This document shows positions 2,858 through 61,796 of a stretch of 64,000 nucleotides of DNA, one piece after another. The translations under genes and the position numbers were made by a program. Source of the stretch: Haliotis rufescens (Eukaryota). The first letter of the stretch is position 1. Each line of letters begins with the position of its first letter. The stretch covers positions 14,694,001 through 14,758,000 of the forward strand of contig NW_025964001.1 of assembly GCF_023055435.1 (NCBI RefSeq), given 5' to 3'. Under the pieces are notes generated by a model. It saw nothing but the letters and a program-made list of their open reading frames with translations. It had not been told where the DNA came from and ran no database searches.

Positions 2858-3429
2858 CTGCGGCAGGAGTGAGTTAAGAAACAGTGCTTTGAACAGTTAT
2901 AGCAAGACATGACAACCTTATATTGGAGAAAGCCTAAAGTGACCCAGGACAGAAATGTTTACCAGCTGCTCACAAAACAATCGTAATAAGTCAGAATATT
3001 GGATTCGAACCCATGTTCACCGAATCACAACTCTGCATCGTGTGTCCTGGCACCTAAGATGGTTGCTGTTGATGGTTTGTAGCTGCACTAAGCAATATTC
3101 CAGCTATATGATGGAAGATGTAAATAATCAAATCTGGACCGGTCAAACCAGTGATGGATATTATTTGATCTAACTGATCATTCTTATAAATCTAATTTGA
3201 TGGCCAGACCCAAGAGTTTGGTAGGACGGTAATTTGGCTGTAAACCTTCAAGCGCCTAACATGCAGCTTGGGTTGTATACTCCCCAGGGAGCTGAGAATA
3301 CAAATTGAGTGCACACTGATCCATTAACCAGGGTAAAAATGTAGCGTTTTGAGCATGATTTAGGGCATGGATTAAGCACATTATAAATATGCAGATTATG
3401 ATCATAATTAGTTCTGCCATCTTCTCTAC

Positions 3430-3647
3430 CTTGTGACTTTCTTGGGTCCCCCTGCGGCCCCATCAACAGCTGCCTTTGGCTCGGCCTTCTTCTCTTGTTT
3501 CTTCTCTTGTTTCTTTTCTTGTTTCTTGTCCTGCTTCTTCTCCTTCTTGTCCTGCTTGCGTCCTCCACCAGCCAGGTCCTCCCCAGTCAGGGCCTTGTAC
3601 TGACCTTTCAGGTCTAGCAGGGCCTTTACCTCCACATCTACTGCAGC
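3430..3647 (-). CDS. EPRS1: EPRS exon 24: WHEP5 helix 2 and Lys-rich linker
   Basis: EVKALLDLKGQYKALTGEDL...KKQEKK repeats...GPKKVTR. Confidence 0.95.
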
Positions 3648-4384
3648 CTGTAGGGATACATTCCTTCATTTGATACCCGCTCAGTATTTCTTAAATAAAT
3701 CATCTTTGAACTGTTAATTACTTGAACAGCCAATAGTGAGTTCAACACATGAAATGAATGATTTGGAACCAAGTGATAAAGCTTGACCTCCCAATTTTAA
3801 TGGTCACCTCTACAGACATGGGATCCTATTCTAACCAGGAATCCAAATAAGGCCAGTATATTATGAAGTATAGAGGTACTTCCACTTACAATGCTGATGC
3901 CCAGTGGTCCAGTTTTACAGTTTGGACATGGGCAGGAATTGGACAACAGTTTGTAGAGCCCAGCCTTTTATAAGCACAGCCTTTTATAAACACTGCTGAT
4001 TCTTCATGTTGCAAAAGCATAGATTTATCAAAGATTGAATCCAAAAAGAACATAAGCCATTATCTGTGACTTTATCTAAAGTGAGTGAGTTGGGTTTACA
4101 CCGTTTTTAACAGTATTCCAGTTACATCACAGTGTGTCAGCTTAATGTGGGAGGCAAGCCGGAAGTGATGCAGGTCTCGACTTTGGTGAAACCAATGAGC
4201 ATGGGTATGGCGCTGACAAACCTAGAACATAATCTGGGTGAACCGGGATTCGAACCCACAATCATAGGTTTCTGGCGTGCCGAAGGGATGCATCCCCGCA
4301 CAGTGAATCGCGGCGCCTCAGACGACTGGGTCACCGATGACCCCCTTTTTCTTAAGAGCTAATTGATCAATAATAAAGTTAAAC

Positions 4385-4609
4385 CTTGTCGCCTCCTGAA
4401 GTTTTGAGCAGTCTAACTTTTTCTCCCTGAGCATCAATTTTTGTTTTGAGCGCTGCCGCTTCTGCCGAGTCTGTTGTAGCTGACATCTCGGGTGCTGACT
4501 TCGCTGGCTGGGTGGCTCCCCCTTGTGGCGGCTTCCAGTCGTTGCCAGTCGCTGCCTTATACTCAGCCTTCAAACTCAGCAGTATCTTCACTTCCGCATC
4601 AATGTCACT
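4385..4609 (-). CDS. EPRS1: EPRS exon 23: WHEP4 helix 2 and WHEP5 helix 1
   Basis: EVKILLSLKAEYKAATGNDW...QGEKVRLLKTSGGDK; 225 nt, phase 0/0. Confidence 0.95.
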
Positions 4610-5062
4610 CTGAAAAACACACAATGTTGCTCATACGGAGGCAGTCAAATACAAGTTTCTTTAAAGGGATCTGTGGTCACAGCACCATAAACTAGCTGTA
4701 TCTGCTCGAATGACACTTGTTTTCCTGGCTCACTCTTTGCCCCACTGGCTACTACTAGTCTTACAACGGAAGGGAATAGGAATGTACATGGGAATCTGCT
4801 TTTCACATGTGATGATATACTCCTTGGCAACAGTCAAGGTATTTACTTTTGTATGTGTGTACCATTGAAGATATTATTTGATTGATGTCTGAATGCTCAT
4901 GCTATGCAAAACAATCCAAATAAAATTAACACTGACCAAAGAGTTTTAAATCAGCTGAAGCACACATGTATACACAATTTTTCAGAAGAATTCCATTAAT
5001 ATCACAGCAGGAAACACCAAAATAAGGCTTCACACAATGTACCAGTGAGAATCAAACCCATC

Positions 5063-5465
5063 TTCCCGAGGCAAGGGAGTTATCTGACTATAAAAGTCCA
5101 GTTTCCACCCTTGCCGAACGAGGCTGGAATTATGGAGTGATATTTTGGTTGGACTAACGCGTCTATGAATAGTCCAATCAAAATTATGTAACGAAATCAA
5201 CATCTGGTTTGTAAACCCCAGATTTCGGTCGATTGCAAGCTTTCACAAAAGCATCTTTACCGTAAATTTAGTGTCAACAGATATTTTCCAAATCTTTTCA
5301 TACTTTTAATCAACGTGCTCATGTGATTTGGCCAATAGGAGGGGCAGAGAAGGTAATTAGTAGTAGCCACTGGTGGTGCTATGATCGGACCCAGAAATTC
5401 TGGCCTAGTTCGGCAGAGGTGGTAAATGAACTTTTACAGTCAGTTAACTCTCTTGCCTCAGGAAA
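5063..5465. mobile_element. MITE-like element with ~70-bp imperfect TIRs (partial copy at ~15290-15442)
   Basis: gaggcaagggagttatctgactataaaag vs cttttacagtcagttaactctcttgcctc. Confidence 0.75.
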
Positions 5466-5553
5466 AGGAATCAAACCTTGATATTCAGCATGTTGGTGAA
5501 GCTATATCCACTAGGTTACCCTAATGGTCTGCAGGACTAGGCCCAAACCTAAG

Positions 5554-6430
5554 TCAGGAAAGATGCTGATATGACACTAACGCCTAGCAGTTACAATTTA
5601 CATTTCTGATTTACCTCCACAAGATACAGTGACACACTGTAGAATACACTTAGATCTTCACCAGCTGACACTCACACTGTCACACTAATAGTATCAGGCA
5701 GGAAAGAGGCTGATATGACACTAAAGCCTAGCAGCTACCACTTACAATTCTGATTTACCTCCACAAGATACAGTGACACACTGTAGAATACACTTAGATC
5801 TTCACCAGCTGACACTCACACTGTCACACTAATAGTATCAGGCAGGAAAGAGGCTGATATGACACTAAAGCCTAGCAGCTACCACTTACAATTCTGATCT
5901 ACCTCCACAAGATACAGTGACACACTGTAGAATACACTTAGATCTTCACAAAGTGACACTCACACTGTCACACTAATAGTATCAGGCAGAAAAGAGGCTG
6001 ATATGACACTAAAGCCTAGCAGCTACCACTTACAATTCTGATTTACCTCCACAAGATACAGTGACACACTGTAGAATACACTTAGATCTTCACCAGCTGA
6101 CACTCACACTGTCACACTAATAGTATCAGGCAGGAAAGAGGCTGATATGACACTAAAGCCTAGCAGCTACCACTTACAATTCTGATTTACCTCCACAAGA
6201 TACAGTGACACACTGTAGAATACACTTAGATCTTCACCAGCTGACACTCACACTGTCACACTAATAGTATCAGAAAGGAAAGACGCTGATATGACACTAA
6301 AGCCTAGCAGCTACCACTTACAATTCTGATTTACCTCCACAAGATAATGACATACTGTAGAATACACTGAGATCTTCACCAGCTGACGCATACACTAATA
6401 GCATGAGGAAGAAAAGTGGCTGATATCACA
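5554..6430. repeat. 144-bp tandem repeat, about 6 copies
   Basis: Equivalent positions at 5700, 5844, 5988, 6132. Confidence 0.93.
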
Positions 6431-7462
6431 TCAATGTCATATTAACTTGAGATCAATACCTTAAATACAATTGTAAGAACGTCTATACATTTTCCATTAG
6501 TCGGGAGTTGCAGATGTTTTAGGAGACAATAATTCAGTTTGGTGAAAATAGTGTGGCTCATTATTAACTTAGAATGACAGAAATCAATACTGTGTCAAGT
6601 AATGTATGACCCTGTCAGAAAAGGTTTGGTCGTCCTACATCACTATCTGCTGAGGAGATACTACGTGGAAACATTTACATATATACATGTACATGTATAT
6701 ATATATATTTAGCGCAGATTTTTTAGATCCCTTTCAAACCGGTTTTCTTGTATAAGCATAAGTGGAATATATGAAACCAGAGACCATATACTGATATTGG
6801 TATCTGACGAAACTCATACTGATTTGGCATAAATATTAGTTGACAGTGATCATGTGAAGATGCATGGCACATCATAGTCTCTGTGCTGTTTCTGATTTGT
6901 GTCACATACCGTATTTGCTGAAATAAGGGCTTGGGTACTTCGAAAATTGACAATTGGGGACACTTATAAAAACTAAGAAACAGACAATAGTTACATTTGT
7001 TGTCTGAGATCAAGCAGTAGATAAAAACTTGGTTCAACAGTTTCTATAATAGTTACTAGGTTATCAAAATGCATTTTACACAGCTGTTTTCTGTGACCAA
7101 GTCAGTAGTGAGTGAGTGAGTATGGTTTTTACGCCGCTTTTAGCAATATTCCAGCAATATCACGGCGGGGGACACCAGAAATGGGCTTCACACATTGTAC
7201 CCATGTCGGGAATCGAACTCGGGTCTTCGGCGTGACGAGCAAACGCTTTAACCACTAGGCTATCATGAATGTTGGTATTTGAGAGGTACATATGCCTGGT
7301 GTCCAGTAAACACTTCAGAAAATTTTAAGTATAATTCAAACAACTTAAAGTCTATCAAATCATTAATAACACAATAGATTTCTTGGTTATAAATTTAAAA
7401 AAAATAATAAACCTATAATTTTGATTTCATAGATAGCTAGACTTACCTAACAGTATAAATGC

Positions 7463-7629
7463 AGTGAGTGAGTGTGTTTGGTTTTACGCTGCTTTTAGCA
7501 ATATTCCAGCAATATCACGGCGGGGGACACAAGAAATGGGCTTCACACATTGTACCCATGTTGGGAATCGAACCCGGGTCTTCGGCTTGACGAGCGAACG
7601 CTTTAACCACTAGGCTACCCGACTGCCCG
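7463..7629 (-). mobile_element. SINE family 2, tRNA-derived, (actc)n tail (second copy at 7107-7263)
   Basis: A box TAGCCTAGTGG, B box GGTTCGATTCC; TSD gtataaaygcag. Confidence 0.88.
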
Positions 7630-9665
7630 TATAAACGCAGATATTTCGGTAGCCAGGACTCTTTAAGCAGACAGTGTCATTGACATTCTTTCAAATTAGA
7701 TACAAGTTGTGGTTCGGTCACTTAAATCTTTTGCCAGTGATCTTCAGACAACTACCTTTATAAACTAGATGGTATCTGTTAAATGTAAGATGAAACTAAG
7801 GGGAATGGGAAACCTTACCAGATAAGAAGTGCATCATTATTCTTATCAATTTTCTGGACCATGTTTAGGCTAAAAAAATAATAGTCTTGGTTCTAAGGCA
7901 CCACCCGCATCATCATAAAGTCTGCCACATATTTGTTTTTGTTTCTATTTTTAAAAAATGTAAACATCCTAATCCTTAAACACAATACACAAAAAAATTG
8001 AAAATGGAAACAAAAACAAAACACGCAATGAACTTTAGGATGATGTTGGCAGTGCCTGAGTACCAAGGCTATTATTGTTTTTAGCCTTCCAGAAGAATTA
8101 GACAGTGAACGAATCTGGATCTTTGAAAAAAACATATGAATGCTTGGGTTTTTTATCATGACTGTCCCACCCATCTAAATTGCTAAATTTGTTGGTTACA
8201 AAAATAATGAAAACATTACCAATACTTCAATTATAAAATGCTTATCTACATTTTTGATATGTACCAGTCATTTACAGATGCAAGAATTGGAGATTTTCAA
8301 AAGAGAACACTCAACTTGACTACCGGTAGTATCACTGATTCACCATCAACAGTGACACCTCCTTGAATAGGTCACTCGGTTCACTGGCCTAGAAAGCACA
8401 ACAACCATACTGACAACATATGAACACAAGCAAAGCTTTAATTTGATTATCAAAAAAAAAGGAAAAAGTATTCTGTTTCATTTTCCCCACTCTATACTGT
8501 TATTGGTAATGGCTGTAGATGACCCAGATGTTGACAGATGACGCAACTCTAATGCCATGTGTACACTACAGAATCAGCTATCTGCCTACCACAACACAAC
8601 ACTCATATCAACTGAAGTATCTACCATACCTTGTACCGGGGTTGTAACTCTGAATGCAGCCAACTATTATCTCCCAGTCTCAAAACAATGTGCTCCACGT
8701 GTGCATGTGAACACAACCCCACTAGTGCTAAAAATAGCCCCACACGCAGAGCTAACCTAGTTGTTTAGCCACATATAGCACTAGAGTTAAACACTGAAAG
8801 AAGGCGTTGTGTGATTGCTCCATGCTTCATTGATTCGGCCTGGGGGATGTGTCAAAGATTTCAACTGAACAATGACTTTGTAAATGATGCAATCCCTGAC
8901 AAATGGACGACAGACAACCTTCCTTTGTTGATGTGTCAATAGGATTTGTGAAATCTAATATTGCAACAGAATCAGAAGTGTACTACCTCTGACATTGTCT
9001 TTAATTTACTGACAATAAATCAAGTGAAAAAAAAAAGGAAAAAAAAAGATCCAAGCAGGATCTCTGAACTGAACCAAGATTAACAACAAGGTCTTTTTGT
9101 ATTCCAACCAGCGAGTCAAAAATATACATTTCAACATGTTCACAAATTAATTGCTATTTCTGACCCATTTCCACTGAAGTGCATCCAATTATGAAGTATG
9201 CATGTCAGCTATGTCAATGCTGCTGTCGGATCGAATAAGAAAACATGAACTACTTTTCCATTCCTTAAATTTACAAAAAGAAAAGTGATGAAAACAACTA
9301 CACAATATATGTTGGCAACACAACATACATTAAAGCTGTATACTGTCTTCAACATGCTCCACATGGTCCAACAGAAGGGATACATTCCTCCCTAGGGCAG
9401 TATGAGTGATATACACACCAGTCAACACATGAGATAAGATGCACTGTCACCCTATATCCCACCCCACCCTCCCATCAGCATGACACACAGACAGCGATCA
9501 TAACCCAATCTAATATGTGGACAGTTCAATCAATAACAAAGATTACTGCATGCCGAAAAACATGCCGGAAATATTTGTCAAAGTCAAGCCAAATATCATT
9601 AACTTATTCACTTATTCACACGGGTTCCTTTTTTTGAAAATCTACTTGCCGATGGAAAATGAATA

Positions 9666-9991
9666 CCATATTTGATGTTATAAGCGCCCACGGCGATATT
9701 TGCTAATATATTTGCAAGTGAACAATCCCAATTAGCACCCCTTTCGATTGATCAATGTACACAAGACTTACTTATTTGCATACAATACGCACTGGTGTGT
9801 TATATGCACCCTTAATTATGGGCAATTATATTCTGTAAAAATATATCTATCATACATAAACATTTCAGGCTGTCAGCATAAACCATGAAATTTATCTTTC
9901 AACTCTGTTTTTTTCACCAAAATAATATTCTAATAAGAGCCCCCATTTCTAATTTTGAGAGCGCCCTGGGCGCTTATTATGTCGAATATGC
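9666..9991. mobile_element. Second, CpG-decayed copy of the same MITE
   Basis: Colinear with 42101-42426. Confidence 0.85.
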
Positions 9992-11635
9992 TAAGCTAAA
10001 ACCACTTGCCCTGAATGAATTTCTAGTTGCCCAAAACTTTTCATTGATTGAAGTGAAAACCATTGCAGATCAGATCCACACACAATTTCACTGAATGTAA
10101 TGGAAACAATACTGAATGAAATTCTGAACATAAATTGTTGAAAAACATCAAGCCAGATCGATACACTGAACAGTCTGTATTACCTGATAATGTAAAAACA
10201 GGGCTAAATGTATACTTCAGTACCTCTAAGTTGAAATGATCTCCTTACTCGAGGACAAGTAGTGACGGGTTATTTTGTTTGTCTGAATAAATTAACTTGT
10301 TCCAGGTGTTACGCAATGGGATTTTTGAACCCCTGTGTATACCTTGAAATACTGTGCATAACATGCTCCAGCATTATTATACACCAAACAAAAAGGGCGG
10401 GGGTATGTTATACCAAGGAATTCCATCCGTCCTTCCGAGGATATTTTTGTGTGTAACCTTTAATTTGAAAACTACTGCATAGATTCTATTCAAACTTGCT
10501 GAACATTTTCTATAATAATAGGAGAGGTGCAGTGCAAAGTTTGATTTCAAGATTTGGATATTCAGAAAAAATACAGCTATTTTTTTATTTCTTTACCTAG
10601 AATTCCTAAACAAATTTAAGGATAGGAGAGGTGCAGTGCAAAGTTTGATTTGCAGAAATAATTAAGATTTTTATCATGTTTTGAACTTAGAATTTTTTTT
10701 ACTTCAACATTTGTGTGAGCTATAACTTGAAAACAACTTTATGGATTCTTTTCCAATTGGGGGTACAGTTTCTAAATAGGAGCGGTGCAGTACAAAGTTT
10801 GATTTCGATTAGTGGATTTTCTGAAAAAATATTGCATTGCATTGTTTTAAACTTAGAAATATGTTGGAGTTAAAGTCTGGGTATTAGTGAGCTCTGCTCA
10901 CTTTTTACCGTGCTAATCTATGTATCGATGTCATATTTTCAAACTAGAGATGTTTGCATTTACGTCAAAAAAAAAGAAGCAGCCACACCAATGCCTTTCC
11001 CTCAAAACTCCGAAAACATTACTTCCAGACCTTGACCTTAATTTAAACACCTCAGGATCCAGCAATTCCCCAAGTCTCTGGATTGTACAAGTAAAAGTGT
11101 AACAGTAACTGGCAATAGATAATACAGCCATGTTTCACAATAACCTCAAACATGACTTTGACCTTTGATAGGCATAGCACCAACATTAGATGAGGTAGGA
11201 TTTATAAGGATACTGGCCTGTAGAGGCAACTGCACCTCAGAAGCTGACCAAAATATAACCATGTTTTACAAAAAAGCTGAATGCTGACCTTGACCTTTTG
11301 ACTAATCTTGACCAAAATCTTTTCAAAGCAGGGCCCATTCTACTTGACCAGGTATATACCAAATTTTCTTTAGTTTAATTTCATTAATATGGCTTCAGGG
11401 ATGTGTAACCACAACTCTTTCACGATTGTTTTTAATGTTATTTACTTTGACCTTTTCATGACATGTGTTAAAAGACTTGTCCTTCACCATTTGGAAAAAC
11501 ATCCATAGAAGAATAATGTCTGATGCCAATCTTTGTGTAGTAGTCATGAGAAAAATCGCCAGTGGTGTAACGGGGGGGGGGGGGGGGGGGGGGGGCCTCT
11601 TAGTTACTGATACAAACCTACAATTTTGAAATCTG

Positions 11636-11763
11636 AGATGTCACTACTGTTTTGAACCATCCAATCATAGCATTGACGGAACGGCTTGATTCAGCAGCTT
11701 TGATCTAGCTACCAAAGAATTCCACTGGTTGCCATGATAACAGCAGTTGGAATAAGATAGCAA
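11636..11763 (-). ncRNA. Putative box H/ACA snoRNA, family A copy A1
   Basis: Two hairpins, H box AGATCA, terminal ACA+3 nt, sense to EPRS intron 22. Confidence 0.65.
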
Positions 11764-12036
11764 ACTTATGTCAAATATGACTTGTCAAGAATAAAGGCTG
11801 TATTTCTAGATACAAAGGCATGTTTTCTTGACCTTGCGCTTTGAAAATATGATCACGTTTTTAATTCCTACCAAGCGAACTGCATCTACAGACAATGTCT
11901 CTATGCAGCAGGTATGTGCTTGAAATAAATAATAACACCACCTAACTCTGATAAAATAATGTCAATATATACCGGGGTAATGTCAATAATTTGCACTTTA
12001 AAGAAACAAATTCCAAACCAAGACCACATTTGTTAA

Positions 12037-12321
12037 GTTGGTTGGTTTGGTTGGTTTTGTTGGTTTGTTGTTTAACGCCGCACTCAGTAATATTCCAGCT
12101 ATATGACGTCCGTCTGTAAATAATCGAGTCTGGACCAGACAATCCAGTGATAAATATCATGGGCATCGATCCACGCAATTGGGACCAATGACATGCATCA
12201 ACCAAGTCAGCGAGCCTGACCACCCGATCCCGTTAGTCGCCTTGTACGACAAGCATAGTCACCTTTTACGGCAGGCATGGGTTGCTGAAGACCTATTCTA
12301 CCCCGGAATCTTCATGGGTCC
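12037..12321 (-). mobile_element. SINE family 1, full length
   Basis: TSD catttgttaag. Confidence 0.88.
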
Positions 12322-13666
12322 CATTTGTTAAGTATAAGTGAACGGATAATTCTATAAGCCTTTCTAAAGAACACTAAAATCATAAAATCTAGTGAGTTAG
12401 GTTAATTCTTTTGAAAATTTGTAGATGATTATCATTAGGTGTAACTCATTTGGACGAGAATAAGGTTGACACACCGATGATAAGAACAGAGGTGAAAAGC
12501 AGATAAAAACCTATAACAAGCAGATCCTGGAACAGGTAAGGGATGCAACTCCGCACAGTCTGAAGACCACATGATCTGACATTAAAATGCAGATGAATAA
12601 TGCAGCACTGCAGTAGGCAGCCAGTGTTTGAAATTCAGAATGAAAAGTTGAGGGTAAATAGTTTATTTCCTGTCCACATAGAATGTTTCTACCTTTCTGA
12701 ACTATCCATGTACACCAAGATGGGATAGCATGAATCATGATAGGATATTATCGAGCCATCACACAACGTCACTGGTTGTTATGAAGGCAGCAGTGTGGAA
12801 GATAGCACATCGAGGACAGCGTGAGATTGTGAGCCAGTTGGATATAACATGGCTGTGAAGAGTATTTCAGTTATTACATATCACAGTGCCAGCATAAAGT
12901 GTGAGGAAAACCCAAGATTATTCAGGTCTTTGACATTTATTACTTTGGCGAAAGCTATGAGCACAGCTATGGTGCTGGTTAAAAATTAATAATCTGTGCA
13001 AATTTGGGATTAAAACTCATAATAATTGGATTCAGCACGTCACCATTGACAACTGGGTGACCTGGGTTCCCTAGTCTTGGAAAGAATCAATCAGTTGTTG
13101 ATAATCTGGTATTAAGTATGTGTGGTCTTAAATTTCCAAACTAAAGATCCTTAACATCAATGTGATTAGTGTACAAGTGTCTGAGGTAGGGTATCTATGT
13201 CCAGAACAGGCATGCATACTTCGGCTTTGTAAACTATATTACTCCACATTCGATAGGGATAATTTTATCTTTCCATGACAAACAAAAATTATTCTTAAAA
13301 TATGTCAAATGTATATTTAAATAAAATCCCTATCAAAAGTTGAATTGCATATAAGTTCATTTCAGACCAAGAAACAAACATCTTCATTCTAAGTATGCAT
13401 GTATCATGAGTATTGATGGAGTAGAAACTGTTTGTGGTATGTGTAACACCACACTCGTCAATATTCTCATGACAGGCTGAAGACCAATTCTAACCCAGGT
13501 AGACAGCATGAAGTAAACCTATCAAGTCCTCACCTCATTTCACACTTGAGGTTTATGTAACATAACTACATATTGGGAGGATAGTGAGAGAAAATAACAC
13601 AGCGGGAGAAACTAAGAATGGGCTGCCTCTCACTTCAATGCATGTAGGAAAGAAAACGCAAACTAC

Positions 13667-13882
13667 CTTTGATGCCTTCTTGCTCTTGAGATCTCGAACC
13701 TTGCCGCCCTGGTCTGCTATTTTCTGTTCCAGTTCCTGATTCCCTCCCTTGATGCCGCTGCCACCAGATGGCGCTGCTGCCTTCTTCCCGCCGTCTGCTC
13801 CAGGCTTCCAGTCTTTCCCAGTAGCAGACTTGTAGTCGGCCTTGAGAGCCAGGAGGACCTTCACTGCAGCATCAACTTCCCC
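13667..13882 (-). CDS. EPRS1: EPRS exon 22: WHEP3 helix 2 and WHEP4 helix 1
   Basis: AVKVLLALKADYKSATGKDW...QGGKVRDLKSKKASK; 216 nt, phase 0/0. Confidence 0.95.
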
Positions 13883-15654
13883 CTGCAGACGATCAGCAGA
13901 AATAATTGATTATTGTCAGAAAAACAAAGTTCAGAAAACTTTCCCTAAATCCAGATCATTTCCAGGTTTTGGAGAGGGTAGAGTTTATTTGCTCTAGTTT
14001 GAAGCAAAAAGAGATGAGATGAGTTGAAAATTCCAAGTATCACTTCTGTTGGTAACATGGAGTCAACTCTTGAGACTGAGAAAAATTATATATTTATCTA
14101 CTGTTTTCATTTTAACTGTATCCAACATTATCACATAGTTTTAATTAACACAATTTGCAAGGAAAGTACAGGTATTCTCCCCAAAAGCAGCATGCAGCTA
14201 GCCTTTGCAGATGTGCGTGTTGCTACAAGGGATAATGCCTAACAGCCATGTATATAACTGGCATATGCATTAGTATTTGTGTCACCATGTTCACTTATTA
14301 AATTAGCCACACAGATCCACTGGACCCATTATCATATATAATCCAGTACTGATAGGCTAGGTGATAGCTTTCACGCCAAAGCGACATTCTCGCGAAAAAG
14401 CTCCATCTTACCCAACAATAAGCGGTACTGTCTTGTGAATGTCTTGATAATCTGATCAGTTTTGTGATGACAAACATCACCAGAGTGCCCTTACCCTCCT
14501 TCCCAGTTAAGTGATTAATAAATTGACTACTGAAGCTGGTTTTTAACACAATTCTAATAATATCTGGCTTAAAGGCTAGTGATGATGATGATGATACTAC
14601 ATTTAATAGCAACTTCCCAGCAATATCACAGCAGGACATGGGCCTCACACATTCATTGCTGTTTGTATGTAGTTTAAATTTGCACTCAGCAATATTCCAG
14701 CTATATGACGGCTGTCTGTAAATAGTCAAGTCTGGACCAGACAATCCAGTGATTGACATCATGACAATCGATCTACACAGTTGGGATAAGATGACATGCA
14801 TCAAGTCAGCAAGCCTGATCACCTGATCCCGTTAGTCGCCTCTTATGACAAGCATAGGTGCCTAGTACGGAAAGCAAGGATTGTTGAAGACCTATTCTCC
14901 ACCTGGATCTTCAATGGGTCACACATTCAATGTAACATTTGGGGAATTAAACCAGTCCTTAGGCATAAAAGAAAACACTTTCACTACTGGGCTACCTCAC
15001 AACCTACAACAATGATCCAGAGTGATGCATCATGGCCTGTTTACTCCAGTGATGTCCCTTATGTGTCCCTCCTATTGACCAATCATATTTCTTGCATATA
15101 CTTCAAACAAAATGGCTGTGCCAAGTTAAGGCAGTCTGATCTATATTGTCATAAAACGGGTCTTAACTCGCGAAAGGCATCAACTTAATTGAGCACCCTG
15201 ATTTAAAACATGTAGAGATTTGGAAAATATTCAGTTAATGGTACAAATGCTTTGCAAATCCTGCAACTGTCTGAAATCTGCACAGCAGTTTACAAACTGG
15301 ATGTCGATTTCGTTACACAATTTTGATTGGACTGTGCATAGACTCATAGTCCAGCCAAAACAAAACTCTGATTTTTCAGCCTAGTTCGGCAAGGTTTGGA
15401 AACAGGACTTTTATAGTCAGTTAACTCTGTTGCCTCTGGAAGATGCAGTTACATGTATTAGGACTTAAGAAATAGTCGTCCTTCAGATAGAGGCATGGAG
15501 GATGATCAGTGCAAACAAATATGGACAACCCACACTCTCATGAAGCAGTAAATGAAAGGTCTGTCATACGTTCTTAACTATGCTACAGTGGATACAAGCT
15601 AGAATCATTTATGGCTACAACCTTTCCGTTGTATCACTGACGATTCTGCTCGGT

Positions 15655-15785
15655 GCATGTTGCTGCCGTTTCGATCCACCTAGTCATGGGAGATAACTAA
15701 GATGGCTTTACTCAGAAGCTTTTATGTAGCTACAGATATGCTACACTGGTTGCCATGGCAGCAGACAGTGAAATGATTGTAGCAT
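15655..15785 (-). ncRNA. Putative box H/ACA snoRNA, family B copy B1
   Basis: Two hairpins, H box ACATAA, terminal ACA. Confidence 0.6.
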
Positions 15786-16120
15786 TGAATTGAGGTTATC
15801 AGACACGGTCAACTTTCAAGAAACTATTGAATCATATTTTGACTACACATTTCAGTGCTTGCAAAGAGTCACATTGATAGGCGTCTGAGCTGTACATATC
15901 TCCAAAACATCCCCTCACCAGTAGAGTTTATGTCCCTCAGGTTCTTGTGAACTCAGGACACCATGTGTCAATTAAGGATGCTGTCATATCATTTTTCTGG
16001 ATGCATATTTAAGGTATACAATTTAGGTTTGCAGATGAGTAAGTCTAGACGAAAACAAAATGTTTTAAGCTGGTCCAGAAGATTGTTTGCAGGCTAATCT
16101 TTCCTTAAATTCTACATAAA

Positions 16121-16252
16121 TATTGTTGCTACAGTTTCGATCCATCAGGTCAAGGGACACAACTCAGATGGCTTTACTCAGGAGCTTTTATATAGCTACA
16201 TCTATTATTGTACTGGTTGCAATGGTAGCAGACAGTGACATGATTGTAGCAT
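16121..16252 (-). ncRNA. Putative box H/ACA snoRNA, family B copy B2
   Basis: H box ATATAA, ACA box, conserved pocket AGTAAAG/ATCGAAA. Confidence 0.65.
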
Positions 16253-16848
16253 TGAATTGAAATCACAGACATGGTCAACTTTTAAAGAACTATTGAATCA
16301 TGTTTTGACTACACTTTTCAGCACTTGCAAAGAGTCACAAAGTTAGGAGTGTGTGCTGTACATCCTTCCAAAACATCCCCTTACAGATGGAGTTTGGTCC
16401 ATCTGGTCCATCAGGTCCATCAGGTCCATCAGGTACTCAGGTACTCATGTACTCTGGATACCACCATGTGTCAATTGAGGATGCTGTCGCATAATTTTCT
16501 CTGAATACTTATTGAAGGTACAAAAATTAGGTTTGCAGATGAGACAAAGATTTAAAGGCAAAAAACTCAGTTAAGCAGAAGAATGTTTGTACGCTAATCT
16601 TTCCTAAAATTCTACATAAATATTGTTGCTAAAAAAATGACAAAAAAGAAATATGATTCTTTCACAAATTTTTGATCATATCACAGACTGGCAGTTTCAA
16701 ACAAACCTATAAGACAACCGGTCATTGCCACAGAATAATAGAACATGATTGAGTTGGGGTTTGAAATTAAGAGAACAAAATCAATAAGGTAATTCTAGAG
16801 TCATCTGCACAAATCACAGGTCTGTCTGAATAATCAAACATGGTATTA

Positions 16849-16978
16849 TGATGTTGCTGCAGTTTCGATCCATCAGGTCAAGGGAGACAACTCAGATGGC
16901 TTTACTCAGCAGCTTTTATGTCACTACAATTACATTGTACTTGTTGCCATGATAGCAGACAGTAGGATGATAGTAGCT
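16849..16978 (-). ncRNA. Putative box H/ACA snoRNA, family B copy B3
   Basis: H box ACATAA, ACA box, stem gctgc/gcagc. Confidence 0.62.
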
Positions 16979-17320
16979 TCAAGGCACTGACATAAAGAAG
17001 TCTGAAATGATATCACAGAATGAAGTGTTTGCACTGGACTTTATGCCATGCTAAATACAGATTATTCATAGTGACTTTTACCATGTTTACATTTTTTTCT
17101 ACTTGAGAGTTTAAAAACATGTGTTATCTTGATATCAGAATCTTATTTTTATAATGAACTTTAGTTTATTTGATAAAGCAGAAATTAGCAACTTTCATAA
17201 TGGTGTTTTTTCACAGATGTGGCCTATAAGCCAAGGCCTTATATTTGCATCATATCTTTAACTTATTTTTACCAGCTGATGTTTATAGCACACAAATATA
17301 AAACATTGGGAACACTAAGA

Positions 17321-17592
17321 TGTTTGTTTGTTTGTTTGTTGTTTAACGCTGCACTGAGCAATATTCCAGCTATATTATGGCGGTCTGTAAATAATCGAGT
17401 TTGGACCAGACAATCCAGTGATTGACATCATGACAATCAATCCACGCAATCGAGATACGATGACATGCATCAACCAAGTCAGCGAGTCTGACCACCCGAT
17501 CCCGTTAGTCGCCTCTTACGACAAGCATAGTCACCCTTTTACGACAAGCATGGGTTGCTGAAGACCTATTCCTCCCCGGATCTTCACGGGTC
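17321..17592 (-). mobile_element. SINE family 1, full length
   Basis: TSD gggaacactaaga. Confidence 0.88.
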
Positions 17593-17722
17593 GGGAACAC
17601 TAAGAAGTGAATCTCATTCATTGTACCCATAACAGGATTGATCCTGAACACTTTGACCCCTAGGCTACCACAACACAATATAACAACTTAAAAGTGAAAA
17701 GCTTGCTGATTGTTTGATAAAC

Positions 17723-17850
17723 AACTGTCACTACTGTTTTGAACCATCCAATCACAGCATCGACGGAACGGCTTGATTCAGCAGCTTTGATCTAGCTACA
17801 ATCGTATTCCACTGGTTGCCATGGTAACAGCAGTGGGATGAAAGTAGCAA
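17723..17850 (-). ncRNA. Putative box H/ACA snoRNA, family A copy A2
   Basis: gctac/gtagc and ccactg/cagtgg stems, H box AGATCA, gctgctg/cagtagt stem, ACA box. Confidence 0.72.
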
Positions 17851-18934
17851 AGTTGGGACTAAATGCACACTGTTAAGTCCTTGTCCAAAGATCTGAGCAA
17901 TTGATGCAGGTGACAAAATGTTGACAGTACAGATTGTTGGGTCTTACACATTATGCTTTATGACAGATGTCTGACAGCTGAGAGAATTCTTTCACTTAAA
18001 GACACCATGATGGTGGCAAACTTCAAGCTTTATTTAAATCAAATGGGATGTGTTTAAGTGGGTGTGGCCAAAAATGTGTATGGATATTTTTGCTTTACTG
18101 TCAATCAGTACAATGATGAATTTCCATCCACACCAAGTTGGTGGAAAACGTACATGATCTTGTGTCTTGCAATCTTAATGAAGAATGAGTGACCGACTGA
18201 AGTATTCAGCTCCTCACACAATATTCCTGCAGCATCAGAGTGAGTGAGTGAGTGAGTGAGTGAGTGAGTGAGTGAGTGAGTGAGTGAGTTGGGTTTAACG
18301 CCACTGAAGTGATGCAGGTCTCAGACGTTTACCACTTCCGTGAAACCCATGAGCACAGGTATGGTGCTGACAAACCTAGAAACATAATCGGGGCGAACCA
18401 GGATTCGAACCCACAATCATAGGTTTCTGGCGTGCCCATCCTGCAGCATCTGAGGGGACACCACAAATTCACTTGACACATTATACCCATTTGGGGAATC
18501 GAACCAGGTGCTTTTGTGTGATGAGCAAACGCTTCAAGCAATAGGCTACCCCCCAGTCCCACTTTCTGAACAATGATCTTCCTTTTTTGAGGTCACATCA
18601 TATATCTAACAGCCACTGGGCTCTGCTACACATGGGATTAATGACTGGAAATTATTGTCATAGATAGGAAGCTCTGACTAGAGATGAAAAGTATATACTT
18701 ATTTCTTCTTTGGTCCAGATTTCAGAAATCAGTCCTGATTGGGATCAATTTGTGGAAACACATCCACCCAAAAGACAACTTCAATAAAATACTGTGTGGT
18801 GTCATGTTATACCAAACATATTTTCACTATTTGTTTTGAAATAAGTTATACACATATCACAATACAAAACAATTTGGTAGTCCCAGATTAGTTTGTGTAA
18901 ACAGGGTTAACATTAAATAAATTAACACGATAAA

Positions 18935-19066
18935 TGATGTTGCCACAGTTTCGGTCCACCTGGTCAAGGGAGAGAACTCAGATGGCTTTACTCAGCAGCT
19001 TTTATATAGCTACTGATATATACTGCACTGGTTGCCATGGTAGCAGACAGTGAAATCATTGTAGCA
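18935..19066 (-). ncRNA. Putative box H/ACA snoRNA, family B copy B4
   Basis: H box ATATAA, ACA box, G-U-tolerated stem gctgc/gtggc. Confidence 0.65.
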
Positions 19067-19428
19067 TGGAATTGATGTTGCAAACTTAACAGATTTTGAA
19101 GTTATCACACATTAACATTCAAAGAACGTTCTACTGAATCACGTTTTGACTATACTTTACAGTGCTTGCAAAGAGTCGCATTGATAGGCATCTGAGCTGT
19201 ACATCTCTCCAAAACATCCCCTCACTGGTAGAGTTCATGTCCCCCAGGTACTTGTGAACTCAGGGACACCATGTGTCAATTAAGGATGCTGTCATATCAC
19301 TTTTCTGAATGCATATTTAGGGTATACAATTTAGGTTTGCAGATGAGTAAGTCTGGAGGAAAACAAAATGTTTTAAGCTGGTCCAGAAGATCGTTTGCAT
19401 GCTAATCATTCCAAAAATTCTACATAAA

Positions 19429-19560
19429 TATTGTTGCTACAGTTTCGATCCATCAGGTCAAGGGACACAACTCAGATGGCTTTACTCAGGAGCTTTAATA
19501 TAGCTACATCTATTATTGTACTGGTTGCCATGGTAGCAGACAGTAGGATTATAGTAGCAA
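19429..19560 (-). ncRNA. Putative box H/ACA snoRNA, family B copy B5
   Basis: H box ATATTA (still ANANNA), ACA box. Confidence 0.63.
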
Positions 19561-19913
19561 AGATACACTGAACATAAATCAAGAGACAGAAATATGGGTC
19601 CTTGATTTGTAGTCACGCTGTGCACAAAAGTCATTGAAGTTCTAGGAATATAAAACCTTGTCAATTGCATGAAACAGCACAACCAAAGCAATAATACTGG
19701 TACTAACTGTGTACGTTTCTCAAAGATGGATGACAACAAACCTGAACACTGAAGACCTATTCTACCCCGGATCTTCACAGGTCGGGAACACTAAGAAGTG
19801 AATCTCATTCATTGTACCCGTAACAGGATTGATCCTGAACACTTTGACCCCTAGGCTACCACAACACAGTATAACAACTTAAAAGTGAAAAGCTTGCTGA
19901 CTGTTTGATAAAC

Positions 19914-20043
19914 AACTGTCACTACTGTTTTGAACCATCCAATCACAGCATCGACGGAACGGCTTGATTCAGCAGCCTTGATCTAGCTACATCAGTTACT
20001 GTACTGGTTGCCATGGTAGCAGACAGTAGGATTATAATAGCAA
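19914..20043 (-). ncRNA. Putative chimeric H/ACA snoRNA A3 (family B 5' hairpin, family A 3' hairpin)
   Basis: 5' half matches B5, 3' half matches A2; H box AGATCA and ACA intact. Confidence 0.65.
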
Positions 20044-20496
20044 AGATACACTGAAATGGAGAACTGCTGAACATAAATCAAGAGACAGAAATATGGGTCC
20101 TTGATTTGTAGTCACGCTGTGCACAAAAGTCATTGAAGTTCTAGGAATATAAAACCTTGTCAATTGCATGAATCAGCACAACCAAAGCAATAATACTGGT
20201 ACTAACTGTGTACGTTTCTCAAAGATGGATTACAACAAACCTGAACACTGCACAAGTCATTACCTTTCAGACAGAAGCAACAAACAAATGCCAAATGACA
20301 AAATATAAATTATCCTTTCACAACTTTTGATCATATCACAGACTGGCAGTATCAAACAAACCTTTAAGACAACCGGTCATTGCCACAGAAATAATAGAAC
20401 ATTATTTAGTTTGGGTTTGCAAGTTAGAGAACAAAATCAATAGAATTATTTGCACAAATCACAGGTCTGTCTGTGAAATAATCAAACATGGTATTA

Positions 20497-20623
20497 TGAT
20501 GTTGCTGCAGTTTCGATCCATCAGGTCAAGGGAGACAACTCAGATGGCTTTACTCAACAGCTTTTATGTAGCTACTTAAAAAAACTGGTTGCCATGGTAG
20601 CAGACAGTAAGATGATAGTAGCT
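20497..20623 (-). ncRNA. Putative box H/ACA snoRNA, family B copy B6
   Basis: H box ACATAA, ACA box; 5' hairpin altered. Confidence 0.58.
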
Positions 20624-20729
20624 TCAAGACAATGACAAAAAAGAATTCTGGAATGATATCATAAAATGAAGTGTTATGACTTAATTTCAGACCAAACTTA
20701 ATACAGTTCATTGTCTTTGAATGCACACA

Positions 20730-20856
20730 TATTGTTGCTACAGTCTTGTTTCATCAGGACAAGGGATACAAGTCAAATGGCTTTATTCAGAAGCTTCTAT
20801 GTAGCTGATATTCAGTACTGGTTGCCATGGTAGCAGGCGTGTCGTGATTTTAGTAT
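20730..20856 (-). pseudogene. Degenerate family B H/ACA copy B7
   Basis: Homologous to B copies, but H box is ACATAG and the pocket is mutated. Confidence 0.5.
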
Positions 20857-21748
20857 GGAAATAGAAACTTAGAGAATTCTGTAATGGCTATCAAAAACTC
20901 GAATGCCTTCAATTCAGCCTTGTTGTTCACCTATGTGATTGCAACACAAAGTCTTTCAAATTGAAAGATATAACACAGCAATGACACTGGTATTAACTGT
21001 TTCTTACAGAAGGACTTCAACAAATCTGAAGAAGTCACTATATACATGACATGACAGACAGTAAACTGCAGAGGAACACTTAGATGCCCAGTGGCAAGGT
21101 GTATAGAATTCTTTTCAGATCTTTGATCTCAAAAATTGGTTGAGTCTATACTCTTCAGACAGATTAAACTGATTTCCTCATTAATAACTACTCACGGTGC
21201 TGTGTGTTTAAGAATATTCTATGATACATTTATTTCATTGTAAAGATATGACGTAAAAAATAAAATATTTGGCTCAAGGGCAATAACATACTTTAGTTTT
21301 TAAAATCTTGAATTTTTTTGGGTAAATCTAAATGCAGAAATTTGATACTTTTATATAGCTTTACTGTTTTTGCATAACTGTTTGCATATTTGTCAAGTAT
21401 TTCTGCCAGCTCCAGTTCAAGCAGAACAATAAAACATGCTAGGTTAGCGACTTTAAGTGAGTGAACGAGTATGGTTTTATTCGAGCAATATCACACCGGG
21501 GTACACCAGATATGGACTCCACACATTGTACCCATGTGGGGAATCGAACCCAGGTCTTCGACGTGACGAGGGAATCCTTTAACTACTAGGCTACCACACC
21601 ACCCCTAGTGACTTTAACAACATCACAGCAGTATCACAGCAGAAGGGCAACTCACTGTACTCGTGTCTGGATCCACCCTGAACATGTTTACCTGTAGACT
21701 AACCCAACGCAACTCAAAAGTGAAAAGCTTGCTGAACGCTTGATAAAC

Positions 21749-21876
21749 AACTGTCACTACTGTTTTGAACCATCCAATCACAGCATCAATGGAACGGCTT
21801 GATTCAGCAGTTTTGATCTAGCTACCATCAAATTCCACTGGTTGCCATAGTAACAGCAGTGGGATGAACATAGCAA
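21749..21876 (-). ncRNA. Putative box H/ACA snoRNA, family A copy A4
   Basis: H box AGATCA, ACA box, pocket GAATCAA/TCAAAA. Confidence 0.68.
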
Positions 21877-22844
21877 AGTTGGGACAAAAGAGAAGCATAG
21901 CAAATGCACACTGCTAGGTCCTTGTCCAAAGAGTCAGAGCAGGTTCATGTTATTTTATACAAGAGTAAGAAATATTCCAGCAATATTATGGTGGCCTGCA
22001 AATAATCAAAGCAGGACCTAACTAACCAGGGCTGAGCATGCCCCACACCCTATCCAGTTTGTCACCTCTTGCAACAAGCGTAGGTTGCTGGGGACTTATT
22101 CTACCCTGGAGCCCCCATGATGTCCAATGATTTAATGCTTTAGATGAATAGCACAGCCCTCTAAATAGCAACCATTTTGGTGGCCAAATGCAACTTAAAT
22201 CTACGATTGGCCTAATCTGCTCGCCACTTGGCTCCCTAAAAGTAATCATAACCGGCGATAATATCTGTTCAAGATATATGTTGGCTCCTAAAAACTTAGG
22301 TTTAGCACCTAGGATATTCATGTTTGGAGCCGCATGGAGGGATGGTGGCAACTGATGGAAGAACACTTCAGACACAAACAAATCTCTTGCGCCAACATTC
22401 TTTACTTCAAATGGTGTCCATCACTGGCACCAATGTATAAACAGCGACCGTCAATCGGCTGGCTATGGTCAGGGGCAAGGTCACCCAGTGACATGATGTA
22501 AACTACCTCTAACTGCTCACTAAAGCATCGACAAGCAGAAAAGCGAGTAGATTTTGCACACTAAAACTATTCGCTGGGGAGAGATCGAGTCGAAAATGTT
22601 TTCAGCAGACGACAACATGCAATTCAGCTGCTGCCTACACATCCTGTTCTGGATATATTGTAGACCTGTACTTGTTTTGTGTCTTTGGTATGCCTGAATC
22701 ATAGACTAAAACCCTGCAGGACCTCTCTTAAGTTTGAACACTGGGATTGTCTTGTGGACAGATAAAATACATCCATATGACAATACTTAACACAAACTGT
22801 TCTTTGACCAGATAATATTATATAACACAGTTGAACATGTTTAC

Positions 22845-30433: not shown

Positions 30434-30604
30434 CTTAGGATGCTTGGCGACTTCCTCGGACAGATCCTTGGCTCCTGCCACAGATACGGGCACGACATCC
30501 CCCTTCTCTAGCGCTGTGAAGCGTGGGACAACTGGGTCAATGACCTTCTTATTGCAGGCCCATATCTTGTCCCACTCCATCATAACAACTGAACGAGAGG
30601 AGCC
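30434..30604 (-). CDS. EPRS1: EPRS exon 13 (GSSRSVVMMEWDKIW...VAKHPK)
   Basis: GluRS sequence; GT-AG. Confidence 0.95.
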
Positions 30605-30720: not shown

Positions 30721-30848
30721 AACTGTCACTACTGTTTTGAACCATCCAATCACAGCAACGACGGAACGGCTTGATTCAGCAGCTTTGATCTAGCTACCAT
30801 AGAATACCACTGGTTGCCATGGGAACAGCAGTGGGATAAAAGTAGCAA
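30721..30848 (-). ncRNA. Putative box H/ACA snoRNA, family A solitary copy A5 in EPRS intron 12
   Basis: Intact boxes and stems; lone copy about 117 nt upstream of the exon 13 acceptor. Confidence 0.72.
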
Positions 30849-31664
30849 AGTTGGGACTAAACAGAAACGTAGAAAGTGTCAAAAGGGTCCAAGCAGGTGA
30901 TGCATGCTGACGCCATTTTACAACACGGTAAGCAATATTCCAGCTATATTATGGTGGCCTGGAAATAATCAAATCTGGTCTTGACAAACCAGAAACGAGT
31001 AAGGTCCATGAAATCAACCAAGGTACCGCGATCCATCAGGTTGCCTGAGCCCACTATGATACAATGATGCTAACTCCGAGCCAACCAGCCCTTTTTCCAC
31101 CCTCAGTGCCAAGTACCAGGCAGGGTAAAAACAAGAACCAACTTTAATTGTTTTTCATGATGCAGCCAGGGTATTGAACCACTGACATTCTGCTCTCGGG
31201 GCAAGCACTCCATTTTCTACCCCACAGAGGCAGGAGTGTGACTGAGTGACTTATACAGGTTGTGGGCATTTACCGATGAGGAAACCCACGAGGTTAGGGA
31301 TGAGGTTGAAAGAACAAGGATCATAATCAAGGGTGTCCTAGCTTCGGACACAAGTTGTGGTGCCGACTGGACCATAGGATTCTGCTTTTGAGTGAGTGAA
31401 AGGAGAGTCAGCTCCATCATGAAGGCTTGTCAATAACCTGACACACTGTTGGTTGGTTTGTTGTGTAACGCCGCACTCAGCAATATTCCAGCTATATGAC
31501 GTCTGTAAATAATCGGGTCTGGACCAGACAATCCAGTGATTAATATCATGAGCATCGATCCACACAATTGGGATCGATGACATGCATCAACCAAGTCAGC
31601 GAGTCTGACCACCCGATCCCGTGACACACTGTAACCCATTTCCTCCAACATTCTGTAGACTCAC

Positions 31665-52890: not shown

Positions 52891-53100
52891 NNNNNNNNNN
52901 NNNNNNNNNNNNNNNNNNNNNNNNNNNNNNNNNNNNNNNNNNNNNNNNNNNNNNNNNNNNNNNNNNNNNNNNNNNNNNNNNNNNNNNNNNNNNNNNNNNN
53001 NNNNNNNNNNNNNNNNNNNNNNNNNNNNNNNNNNNNNNNNNNNNNNNNNNNNNNNNNNNNNNNNNNNNNNNNNNNNNNNNNNNNNNNNNNNNNNNNNNNN
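52891..53100. other. Assembly gap (210 N)
   Basis: Run of n. Confidence 1.
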
Positions 53101-53435
53101 TCTCCAGGTGTGTTTATGTGTTTTATTTAAAACAAAGTAGATACAATTTCATTATTTAAATGAGAACATATATAGAAAAAGAGGGGCGTTTGAAAGTAAA
53201 GGGCATATAATACATTATTATAATCATAACTTCCTGTGCTAATAAAACCTAGTTTAAACAAGGAGTACAGTACACTCATCTAACTACCTGGTGTAAAGGC
53301 GCGTGTACATCCCAAGGCCAGTGCATACTATTGAAGCACAATGTATTGCATTTGAAATGGCTCTTAGAGTGGCCTTTGTTTTTCCTCGCAGTCAGAAATA
53401 CTACATCAATAACATGGCAGTTCTAGATAAATGTG

Positions 53436-55572: not shown

Positions 55573-57327
55573 ACATATACAGTAATTGTTCGTCTCCCCC
55601 TGTCACAGAAACACACTGAGAGGTTTGAAAAAATACCCTGTCTCTAACACAAATCCCTGGCCACCTCCAACCCCAACGCGTCCAGGGTTGAATATTGTTT
55701 TGAACGGAATCCGCCCAACGGCCGCTGAGGTATAATAGCTCAATGGATGGTGTGTTCGTCCGTTGTCTACACAGTCCGAGTTCGATATCCACATAAAAAC
55801 ACACTTTGTGTATATAGGCCAAGGGTCCTTTGTATAAAATCTCAGGCACAAGTTGAGATTACATAAGCACGCAATAATTGATTTTACATGTTAGTGAAGT
55901 ATTATTGCTGAGATAACAAATGGATATACAATTATAGAATGTAAATAGAATAACTATAACACATGCATGTATGCCATTGATTTGATTTCTAAAAGGTTGG
56001 TTTAACTATGTGAAGTTTTATAAAAAATAACTATTTATTATTATTTATTTATAAATATAATGGATTACGTGCTGCGTGCAACATAACCCAGGAGTTCAGA
56101 CAGTTACTGGCTCGCTGTGTGGGTGATGCTGGAGACCACCTGCTGAATTTGAAGAAAGCGTGCTTTAATGAATGCATATTTTTAAAAGTAATTCCTCACG
56201 CCTCATGTCTTCTCGGAGCTTGTGTATAACATGTATATTTTTTTAAGTTGGTCTACATGTGCATATACATGTACTTCGAGTCCTCGAGTTATCTTCGATA
56301 TTTCTTTTCTGTTCTTGTGGCTATATCTAAAATACACAAACCTAATTTATTTAACAGAATATAGTTCTGTTGATAATTTTAATTACATCACCGACGTATC
56401 CAACACGTGCTTAGTTTCACCCAGCAGCTAAATTTGAATACCTCTTGAGGTCAAGTACCTTCTTCTGTTGGGATGTTGAAAGAAATTGTGATGAACAAAC
56501 CAAACGAACCAAAAGCCGCGAGGAGTTATCTCCCTTGTGTTACAATCCCTATCGACTATCTCGCGAGGTCTGCAGAACGAGGGCTACACAGGTCACAAGG
56601 TATCGCGTTGATAATCCAGATTGCTGTGAATCGTGATAGTCTCTGCGTCGTCAAAGCCCATACCTTGTGTTCAGCACGTATCATACACCTTGTCATGATA
56701 ATGCGACTGGTTCTAATGTTAATGTATCACTGTAACAATGTTGATCGATAACGTTGACATGGACTGATTGATAACGCCTGATTATCGAGTGGCATTGAAG
56801 CGTAATGTACAGCACGTATTATGATATTGGATCAAAGTTGGCCCGGATGTCATACGTCGGTTAACACGTGTCGTTTTAAAAAAATACAATTTATGACTGA
56901 GTAACGGAGGTATAATATACCATGAAAATGCCTCTATCGGATGCCTCCGTGCAGATGGGTTTCCCAGTGATTTGTCAACCGTCTAAAATGCGAATCGGGT
57001 GTCTGATGCAAAGGTTGGTTGGTTTGTTGTTTAACGCCCCACTCAGCAATATTCCAGCTATATGACGGCGGTCTGTAAATAATCGAGTCTGGACCAGACA
57101 ATCCAGTGATTGACATCATGAGCATCGATCCACGCAATTGGGATCGATGACATGCATCAACCAAGTGAGCGAGCCTGACCCCCCGATCCCGTTAGTCTCC
57201 TATTACGACAAGCATAGTCGCCTCTTACGGCAACGGAAGACAATGATGAGTATGCGTTGTAACACTACGACGTGGGCTGCTGCATGGTCATCGACTCCGT
57301 TAGTACATTTACGCGTATACGAGGGAG

Positions 57328-61592: not shown

Positions 61593-61796
61593 TATTTACT
61601 TTTGTTATTTCTACGACAACCTTTTAGCTATGTTTAAGAAGTTATTTTGCAACTGTCAGCCTCGATTGTTTGCATTTGACCTATGTATTCTCTCACAAGT
61701 GGTCCTGCTTTCTTCAGGTAAATCAAGAGTCTGAACTTCAGCTGTATCGGGAATGATTTGGAATCCAACTTCGTGTGAATGTGTAGCTGAAACATC

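Follow-up and report, generated by a model that had tools for sequence, protein, structure and literature searches.

The stretch analysed here (the window) is a 64,000-nt segment of the Haliotis rufescens genome (RefSeq assembly GCF_023055435.1, contig NW_025964001.1, positions 14,694,001 to 14,758,000), and all coordinates given below are counted from its first letter on the forward strand. The window carries on its minus strand a gene resembling EPRS, in one intron of which we identified ten units of about 130 nt with the features of H/ACA small nucleolar RNAs (snoRNAs), together with three further copies in other introns of the same gene. After searching the EPRS-like exons one by one, WHEP-TRS matches of Pfam were found in minus-strand frames at 13556-13909, 4382-4630 and 3429-3665, with a piece of the class II synthetase core further downstream, while the homologues of an upstream exon (30434-30604) carry the GluRS domains of Pfam, one of them being named glutamyl/glutaminyl-tRNA synthetase by one source. 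The intron and the exon of most concern are as follows.

13883..22844 (8,962 nt), minus strand: host intron, with GT at 22844/22843 and AG at 13884/13883; both flanking exons are Pfam WHEP-TRS; contains units U1 to U10
13667..13882, minus strand: WHEP exon of 216 nt between two unit-bearing introns; 3' border inferred from the reading frame and GT

The placement of this intron between two WHEP exons of EPRS, proposed in a first-pass annotation made from the letters of the window, is thus borne out by its borders and by both neighbours. The next intron downstream (about 4611-13666) carries two copies, and a total of 12 of the 13 copies lie in these two introns of about 9 kb, on either side of the frame-preserving 216-nt exon. 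A full-text literature search combining snoRNA, EPRS, host gene and intron returned no paper, and EPRS appears not yet to have been described as a snoRNA host.

Repeat finding and alignment gave ten units of 127-134 nt within the host intron, the first at 15655-15786 and the last at 21750-21877, as had been annotated. All of them lie on the minus strand as the gene does, so that they are sense to EPRS, and the motifs listed in the first-pass annotation are the reverse complement of the window for this same reason. Alignment separates the units into two subtypes, distinguished chiefly by the 3' hairpin: type A includes U1, U2, U3, U5, U6, U8 and the decayed U9, and type B is represented within the array by U4 and U10. 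The first-pass annotation had implied two copies outside the array; both exist (X11 and X12), and a covariance model built from these twelve copies added a diverged thirteenth (X13). In the list below, bits are scores of this covariance model, z is the folding z-score, MFE stands for minimum free energy, and the descriptors are described thereafter. U1 to U10 always denote units of the array; small nuclear RNAs (snRNAs) are written with that word.

15655..15786, minus strand: U1, type A; H box ACATAA, ACA+3; 139 bits; MFE fold a double hairpin; strict H/ACA descriptor passed
16121..16253, minus strand: U2, type A; H box ATATAA; 141.3 bits; relaxed descriptor passed
16620..16631, minus strand: 12-nt stump of a unit 3' end (stem end, ACA, 3 nt); repeat family D10; edge of a tandem block of ~500 nt
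16849..16980, minus strand: U3, type A; H box ACATAA; 140.4 bits; MFE fold a double hairpin with a 9+9-nt pocket
17725..17851, minus strand: U4, type B; H box AGATCA; 132.2 bits; z -2.89, canonical fold
18935..19068, minus strand: U5, type A; H box ATATAA; 138.1 bits; relaxed descriptor passed
19429..19561, minus strand: U6, type A; H box ATATTA; 147.7 bits
19915..20044, minus strand: U7, chimera by alignment; type A 5' hairpin (U6-like) and type B 3' hairpin (U4-like), joined at the hinge
20497..20625, minus strand: U8, type A; H box ACATAA; 137.7 bits; strict descriptor passed; canonical MFE fold, z -1.94
20730..20857, minus strand: U9, degenerate; stems broken, H box ACATAG; 104.6 bits, the lowest in the array; z 0.03, without double hairpin
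21750..21877, minus strand: U10, type B; H box AGATCA; 129.5 bits
11636..11764, minus strand: X11, type B, in the next intron downstream (about 4611-13666); flanks unrelated to those of the other copies; z -3.35
12681..12809, minus strand: X13, diverged 13th copy; 41 bits, E 9e-7 over the window; ATAATA, ACA, 15-nt spacing and compensated stems kept
30721..30849, minus strand: X12, lone type B copy in an intron of ~1.06 kb in the GluRS part; ~116 nt upstream of the 3' splice site; canonical MFE fold, z -1.82

The RNAalifold consensus of the units consists of a 5' hairpin, a single-stranded hinge with the sequence ANANNA, a 3' hairpin, and lastly ACA plus three bases, and this fold and the boxes agree with the form that had been annotated. 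The triplet ACA is found in 13 of 13 copies, one or two nt past the last stem, and lies exactly 15 nt from the 3' upper stem in each of them; the canonical distance between the top of the pocket and the H or ACA box is 14-16 nt. On the 5' side, the upper stem lies 13-18 nt from the H box (16 nt in six copies). The annotated H-box variants ACATAA, ATATAA, ATATTA and AGATCA are all present, ANANNA standing at the aligned place in 11 of the 13 copies and two nt along in X13 (ATAATA) and in U9, the only array copy in which the aligned place is broken (ACATAG); since the hinge is rich in A, the motif is weak on its own. On a MAFFT alignment, 95.3% of the stem cells are paired, versus 14-52% when the partners are slid against each other, and three stem pairs are changed on both sides. 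With X13 included, in which the stems are kept through two-sided changes, eight double-change cells were counted against 3.0±1.3 in shuffles, a modest support only, given that the copies are paralogous and that the alignment itself had been fitted to the model. The tolerance of the stems for G·U pairs was confirmed, GCUGC standing opposite GCAGC, GUAGC or GUGGC. A total of 47 stem cells are G·U and only 7 are A·C, giving 94.8% pairing in the sense and 82.4% in the antisense direction, and for this reason the structure belongs to the sense strand and not to its complement; a DNA palindrome would behave differently.

When eight units were folded singly, the MFE structure was the consensus double hairpin for six, and the folding z-scores ranged from -1.8 to -3.4 for type B and from -1.1 to -1.9 for type A, with a value of 0 for the degenerate U9. 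A strict home-made descriptor (which requires ACA, ANANNA, a pair of hairpins that fold separately, and a pocket lying 13-17 nt from its box) matched only two places on both strands of the window, both of which are units, and a relaxed version matched 8 of the 13 units versus about 25 places in the remaining ~126 kb of the two strands.

Comparison of the units with their surroundings supports the annotation of the units as better kept than the spacers. Of 66 pairs, 63 show higher identity in the unit than in either 120-nt flank, and in the alignable duplicate blocks, leaving out the chimeric U4/U7 pair, mismatches number 71/653 in units versus 196/1075 in spacers, and gap columns 6 versus 162. 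Mean pairwise identity is 0.74-0.88 in the stems and boxes and 0.93-1.00 within each subtype in the 3' pocket strands, dropping to 0.35 in the 3' strand of the 5' pocket, 0.47 in the 5' flank and 0.36 in the three nt after ACA. The conserved block therefore extends from the first stem to ACA, since identity falls in the 5' flank and again past ACA. As judged from these identities and from the fixed 15-nt distance, the putative working part under constraint is the 3' hairpin, the 5' pocket being free to vary. The two type B copies of different introns, X11 and X12, are 0.91 identical within the unit, with flanks of 0.12 and 0.23 that become unalignable right outside the unit.

A BLAST-type search of the whole 1.33-Gb assembly, using one query unit per subtype, detected copies in the EPRS-like gene alone and without exception on the minus strand; two of these lie in introns other than that of the array. 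Running the covariance model over the whole genome gave the same 13 copies and none elsewhere (this search scores only the best candidates, so that very weak copies could escape it). By both searches all the copies lie in the EPRS-like gene and on its coding strand. The first-pass annotation had reasoned from the usual hosting of H/ACA RNAs in introns of translation-related genes, and the units are indeed sense within the introns of such a gene and confined to it. Neither a search of metagenome contigs with the exact unit pattern nor a search of 80 metagenome GluRS/EPRS exon loci of unidentified taxa with the unit model gave a match, both being uninformative on close relatives.

The array is composed of nested duplicated blocks, whose periods are about 0.47-0.5, 2.2 and 3.3-3.6 kb and which carry along spacers and pieces of short interspersed nuclear elements (SINEs; repeat families D3-D7). 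Upstream of the chimeric U7 the flank resembles that of U6 (0.85), and downstream it resembles that of U4 (0.97; repeat families D5 and D7), the unit and its flanks spanning 19749-20250 with the join inside the hinge. This mixture of hairpins and flanks suggests that units of the two subtypes recombined non-allelically. The birth and death proposed for the family is well illustrated by this recombinant, by the degenerate U9 and by the stump, which the first-pass annotation had placed at ~16621 and which consists of the final 12 nt of a unit fused to a duplicated spacer. Judging from the repeats, the mode of growth is predicted to be cis-duplication and unequal crossing-over inside EPRS; cis-duplication of snoRNAs inside one host gene has been described in vertebrates (PMC2653536). 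Apart from the units, tRNA-derived SINE copies fill the intron at 14640-14900, 17330-17600, 18290-18560, 19750-19900 and 21470-21610, and a perfect (GAGT)13 microsatellite (18238-18289) heads one of them.

The reading of the units as a snoRNA family is based on the architecture, the boxes, the fixed spacing, the strand-specific pairing, the limits of conservation, the sense orientation, the single housekeeping host and the lone X12. We estimate at about 0.7 the probability that the units represent a real H/ACA snoRNA family with at least several copies under selection; the family is also probably a lineage-specific, intron-encoded orphan one that grew inside EPRS by local duplication and has no detectable relative in Rfam. 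According to this model, the units would be transcribed within the EPRS pre-mRNA, each double hairpin, together with the H and ACA boxes, would recruit dyskerin, Nhp2, Nop10 and Gar1, and the protein-covered core of ~130 nt would outlast the breakdown of the intron. The lone X12, which is placed in the classic layout of one snoRNA per intron, may be released through ordinary splicing and trimming; release from the ten-unit intron would require cleavage between the units, as in the intronic clusters of Drosophila and rice.

Several results weigh against this reading. The standard route of splicing and trimming cannot free ten snoRNAs from a single intron. Covariation across the copies, to which the first-pass annotation had looked for support, is in part present, with 3-4 compensated pairs, but it is thin, and the shared ancestry of paralogous copies inflates even this count. 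A scan of the units against Rfam matched no H/ACA family: no match reached the gathering threshold in the whole window, and with Rfam (15) at E<=10 over 15400-22100 only chance matches to unrelated families appeared, none of them on the unit strand. The lack of an Rfam match means that no named family can be assigned, and does not bar membership in the class. The youngest duplicate blocks are nearly equal inside and outside the unit (0.93 for both unit and spacer of U2/U6), and some copies may for this reason simply be young.

The search for targets and the expression data point in the same adverse direction. Targets were taken from the Haliotis rufescens genome itself (18S, ITS1-5.8S-ITS2 with its internal transcribed spacers, and 28S ribosomal RNA (rRNA); U1, U2, U4, U5 and U6 snRNA). 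Every pocket was scanned against the rRNA by the bipartite rule, with shifted stem borders and shuffled controls; the rule requires the 3' pocket strand to pair with the target's 5' arm and the 5' pocket strand with its 3' arm, leaving U and N free. For the conserved 3' pockets, the highest-scoring pairings with 18S, ITS/5.8S and 28S were no better than those with shuffled rRNA (p 0.17 and 0.45), and the 5' pockets likewise did no better against rRNA than against shuffled sequence. In three microRNA (miRNA)-seq libraries labelled as of the same species (about 57 million reads), compared with the nine units U2-U10, no read fell on these units, the set having no positive control and the 18-30-nt fraction being unsuited to an RNA of 130 nt. 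One probable RNA run gave contigs that span the intron in places only and thinly, at a depth of 2-10, ignoring the unit borders. Caution is due because no RNA has been seen and because snoRNA-like copies are often pseudogenes (PMC3349704).

Three individual rRNA candidates were rejected. 18S 1289-1298 is perfectly complementary over 10 nt to the 5' strand of the 3' pocket of type B, but the second arm is unpaired; the 28S site GAUAAC-UG-GCUUG allows only 3+5 bp by hand count, below the chance level; and a 12-nt complement of the most conserved unit segment to 28S, based on the human sequence, fails in the 28S of Haliotis rufescens itself, where one base is different. A cluster of miRNAs or a mirtron was also considered and dropped, the same miRNA-seq reads including no arm of ~22 nt on U2-U10, again with no positive control. 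The SINE copies gave the sole small-RNA reads of the stretch, a few in number, and in the probable RNA run their summed contig depth is very high.

The same results bear on the alternative that the array consists mostly of relics, one or a few copies such as X12 and X11 working now or once, and the remainder being a neutral by-product of segmental duplication in a large intron rich in repeats, mostly unexpressed or decaying. We regard this explanation as unlikely, though as the most serious of the alternatives. In its favor, the nested duplications drag spacers and SINE pieces along (D3-D7), the youngest pair U2/U6 is equal in unit and spacer, U9 is already degenerate and a stump is left at 16620, the miRNA-seq gave no small-RNA reads on U2-U10 (no positive control), and many snoRNA-like copies are known to be pseudogenes (PMC3349704). 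Against it, mismatches in the units of alignable blocks amount to only ~60% of the spacer rate, with 6 gap columns against 162; both boxes, every stem and the 15-nt distance are intact in 9 of the 10 array copies; and even the recombinant U7 retains intact hairpins. The confinement of all copies to the EPRS-like gene in sense orientation, the lack of any trans target found and the same lack of small RNA on U2-U10 would also suit a structured cis-acting element of the EPRS introns, for instance one bound by protein and affecting the inclusion of the 216-nt WHEP exon, which is frame-preserving and flanked by the two 9-kb introns with 12 of the 13 copies, the likeness to H/ACA RNAs being then incidental. 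This we hold to be improbable, for the two hairpins, ANANNA, the ACA at the edge of conservation and the invariant 15-nt spacing would all have to be coincidence, and X12 is placed far from the WHEP exons, in another, small intron.

Repeated insertion of a mobile element (a SINE, a miniature inverted-repeat transposable element (MITE) or a snoRNA retrocopy) has in its favor that the introns are rich in tRNA-derived SINEs and that three type B units adjoin a SINE fragment. The first-pass annotation had considered dispersed copies in both orientations to be the mark of a transposon; this alternative fails at the sensitivity of the genome searches, since 13 of 13 copies in 1.33 Gb belong to a single gene and a single strand. 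The unit ends carry no poly-A tail, and X11 and X12 have no neighbouring SINE. Insertion of a mobile element is accordingly given hardly any weight.

Under the preferred reading of a selected H/ACA family, the units are classified as orphan guides, because the 3' pocket has no rRNA match above chance, and since this pocket is conserved, the family becomes a candidate for a non-ribosomal target. Among the snRNAs, the 5' pocket of type B matched U5 snRNA at U58 with 0 of 500 shuffles as good for unit U10, p about 0.01 for U4 and X11, and no significance for X12, and the 3' pocket of type B matched U1 snRNA at U73 with 0 of 200 shuffles as good, these matches having arisen among many pockets tried. 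Both break the 14-16-nt rule, because two outer pairs of the upper stem must open and the U then lies 17-18 nt from the box, and the two sites are candidate leads only. To our knowledge, neither U5 U58 nor U1 U73 is an established pseudouridine. Together with 18S U116 (in approximate human numbering) they are the best target candidates, although no rRNA match exceeded chance. RNAs of the Cajal body class (scaRNAs) are recognized by a CAB box (UGAG) in the apical loop together with an snRNA target; the apical loops of type B have no UGAG, and type A has UGAG in the 3' hairpin, at the 5' edge of its apical portion. An intron with two or more snoRNAs can also give rise to a long RNA capped by small nucleolar ribonucleoproteins (snoRNPs) at both ends, the sno-lncRNAs (snoRNA-ended long noncoding RNAs), as exemplified by SLERT with its H/ACA ends. 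Such RNAs have been reviewed (PMC5054931). The ten-unit intron offers many possible capped pairs, and the contigs of the probable RNA run are too thin and cannot reveal RNA ends. That the family works away from rRNA in one of these ways, type B acting on snRNAs (5' pocket on U5 U58, 3' pocket on U1 U73) or the uncut ten-unit intron yielding long intronic RNAs with H/ACA caps, is a speculative and rather improbable extension.

The snRNA genes of this genome are organized in long tandem arrays, for U2 snRNA (C181, period ~1.17 kb), U5 snRNA (C603, ~0.63 kb), U6 snRNA (C235, ~1.48 kb), U4 snRNA (C112, ~1.48 kb) and U1 snRNA (C46, ~0.59 kb), and those of U4 and U6 snRNA also stand in one common array region on C112.

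The closest known arrangement is the intronic snoRNA gene cluster of Drosophila melanogaster and rice (Huang et al. 2005 and Liang et al. 2002, as cited in PMC2780460). These clusters are described as several snoRNA genes, often mutual isoforms, lying in sense within one host intron, and like the EPRS array they depart from the vertebrate rule of one snoRNA per intron. The ten units of the host intron and the two of the next intron, on the host strand, would count as an intronic snoRNA cluster only if the units are snoRNA genes. Unlike the clusters of Drosophila and rice, the array described here consists of ten H/ACA-like units of one near-identical family in a 9-kb intron of a protein-coding aminoacyl-tRNA synthetase gene in a mollusc. 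With canonical metazoan intronic H/ACA RNAs (PMC2653536) the units share the length of ~130 nt, the order hairpin, H box, hairpin and ACA, the 14-16-nt spacing, a translation-related host and paralogues across the introns of that host; unlike them, they have no Rfam match and no rRNA target above chance, and only the 3' pocket is seemingly constrained.

If the RNAs are made, they would constitute a previously undescribed H/ACA family, and a protein-coding gene of an invertebrate outside the flies would clearly be found to hold many snoRNA genes in one of its introns, raising the question of how ten snoRNPs leave one lariat. The array records the birth, recombination and death of snoRNAs together, in its two subtypes, hinge recombinant, decayed copy and stump. 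Were the version with snRNA guides or capped long RNAs true, it would link EPRS transcription to splicing or to nuclear RNA regulation.

Elsewhere in the window, a long minisatellite at 53400-55600 is open in several frames on both strands (with repeats such as QQLVYLVHTL and PVVEAYGPDK) and adjoins an assembly gap (52891-53100). An open frame of 321 amino acids at 61791-62753, on the plus strand and thus opposite to EPRS, shows a Cys/His pattern resembling the MYND-type zinc finger.

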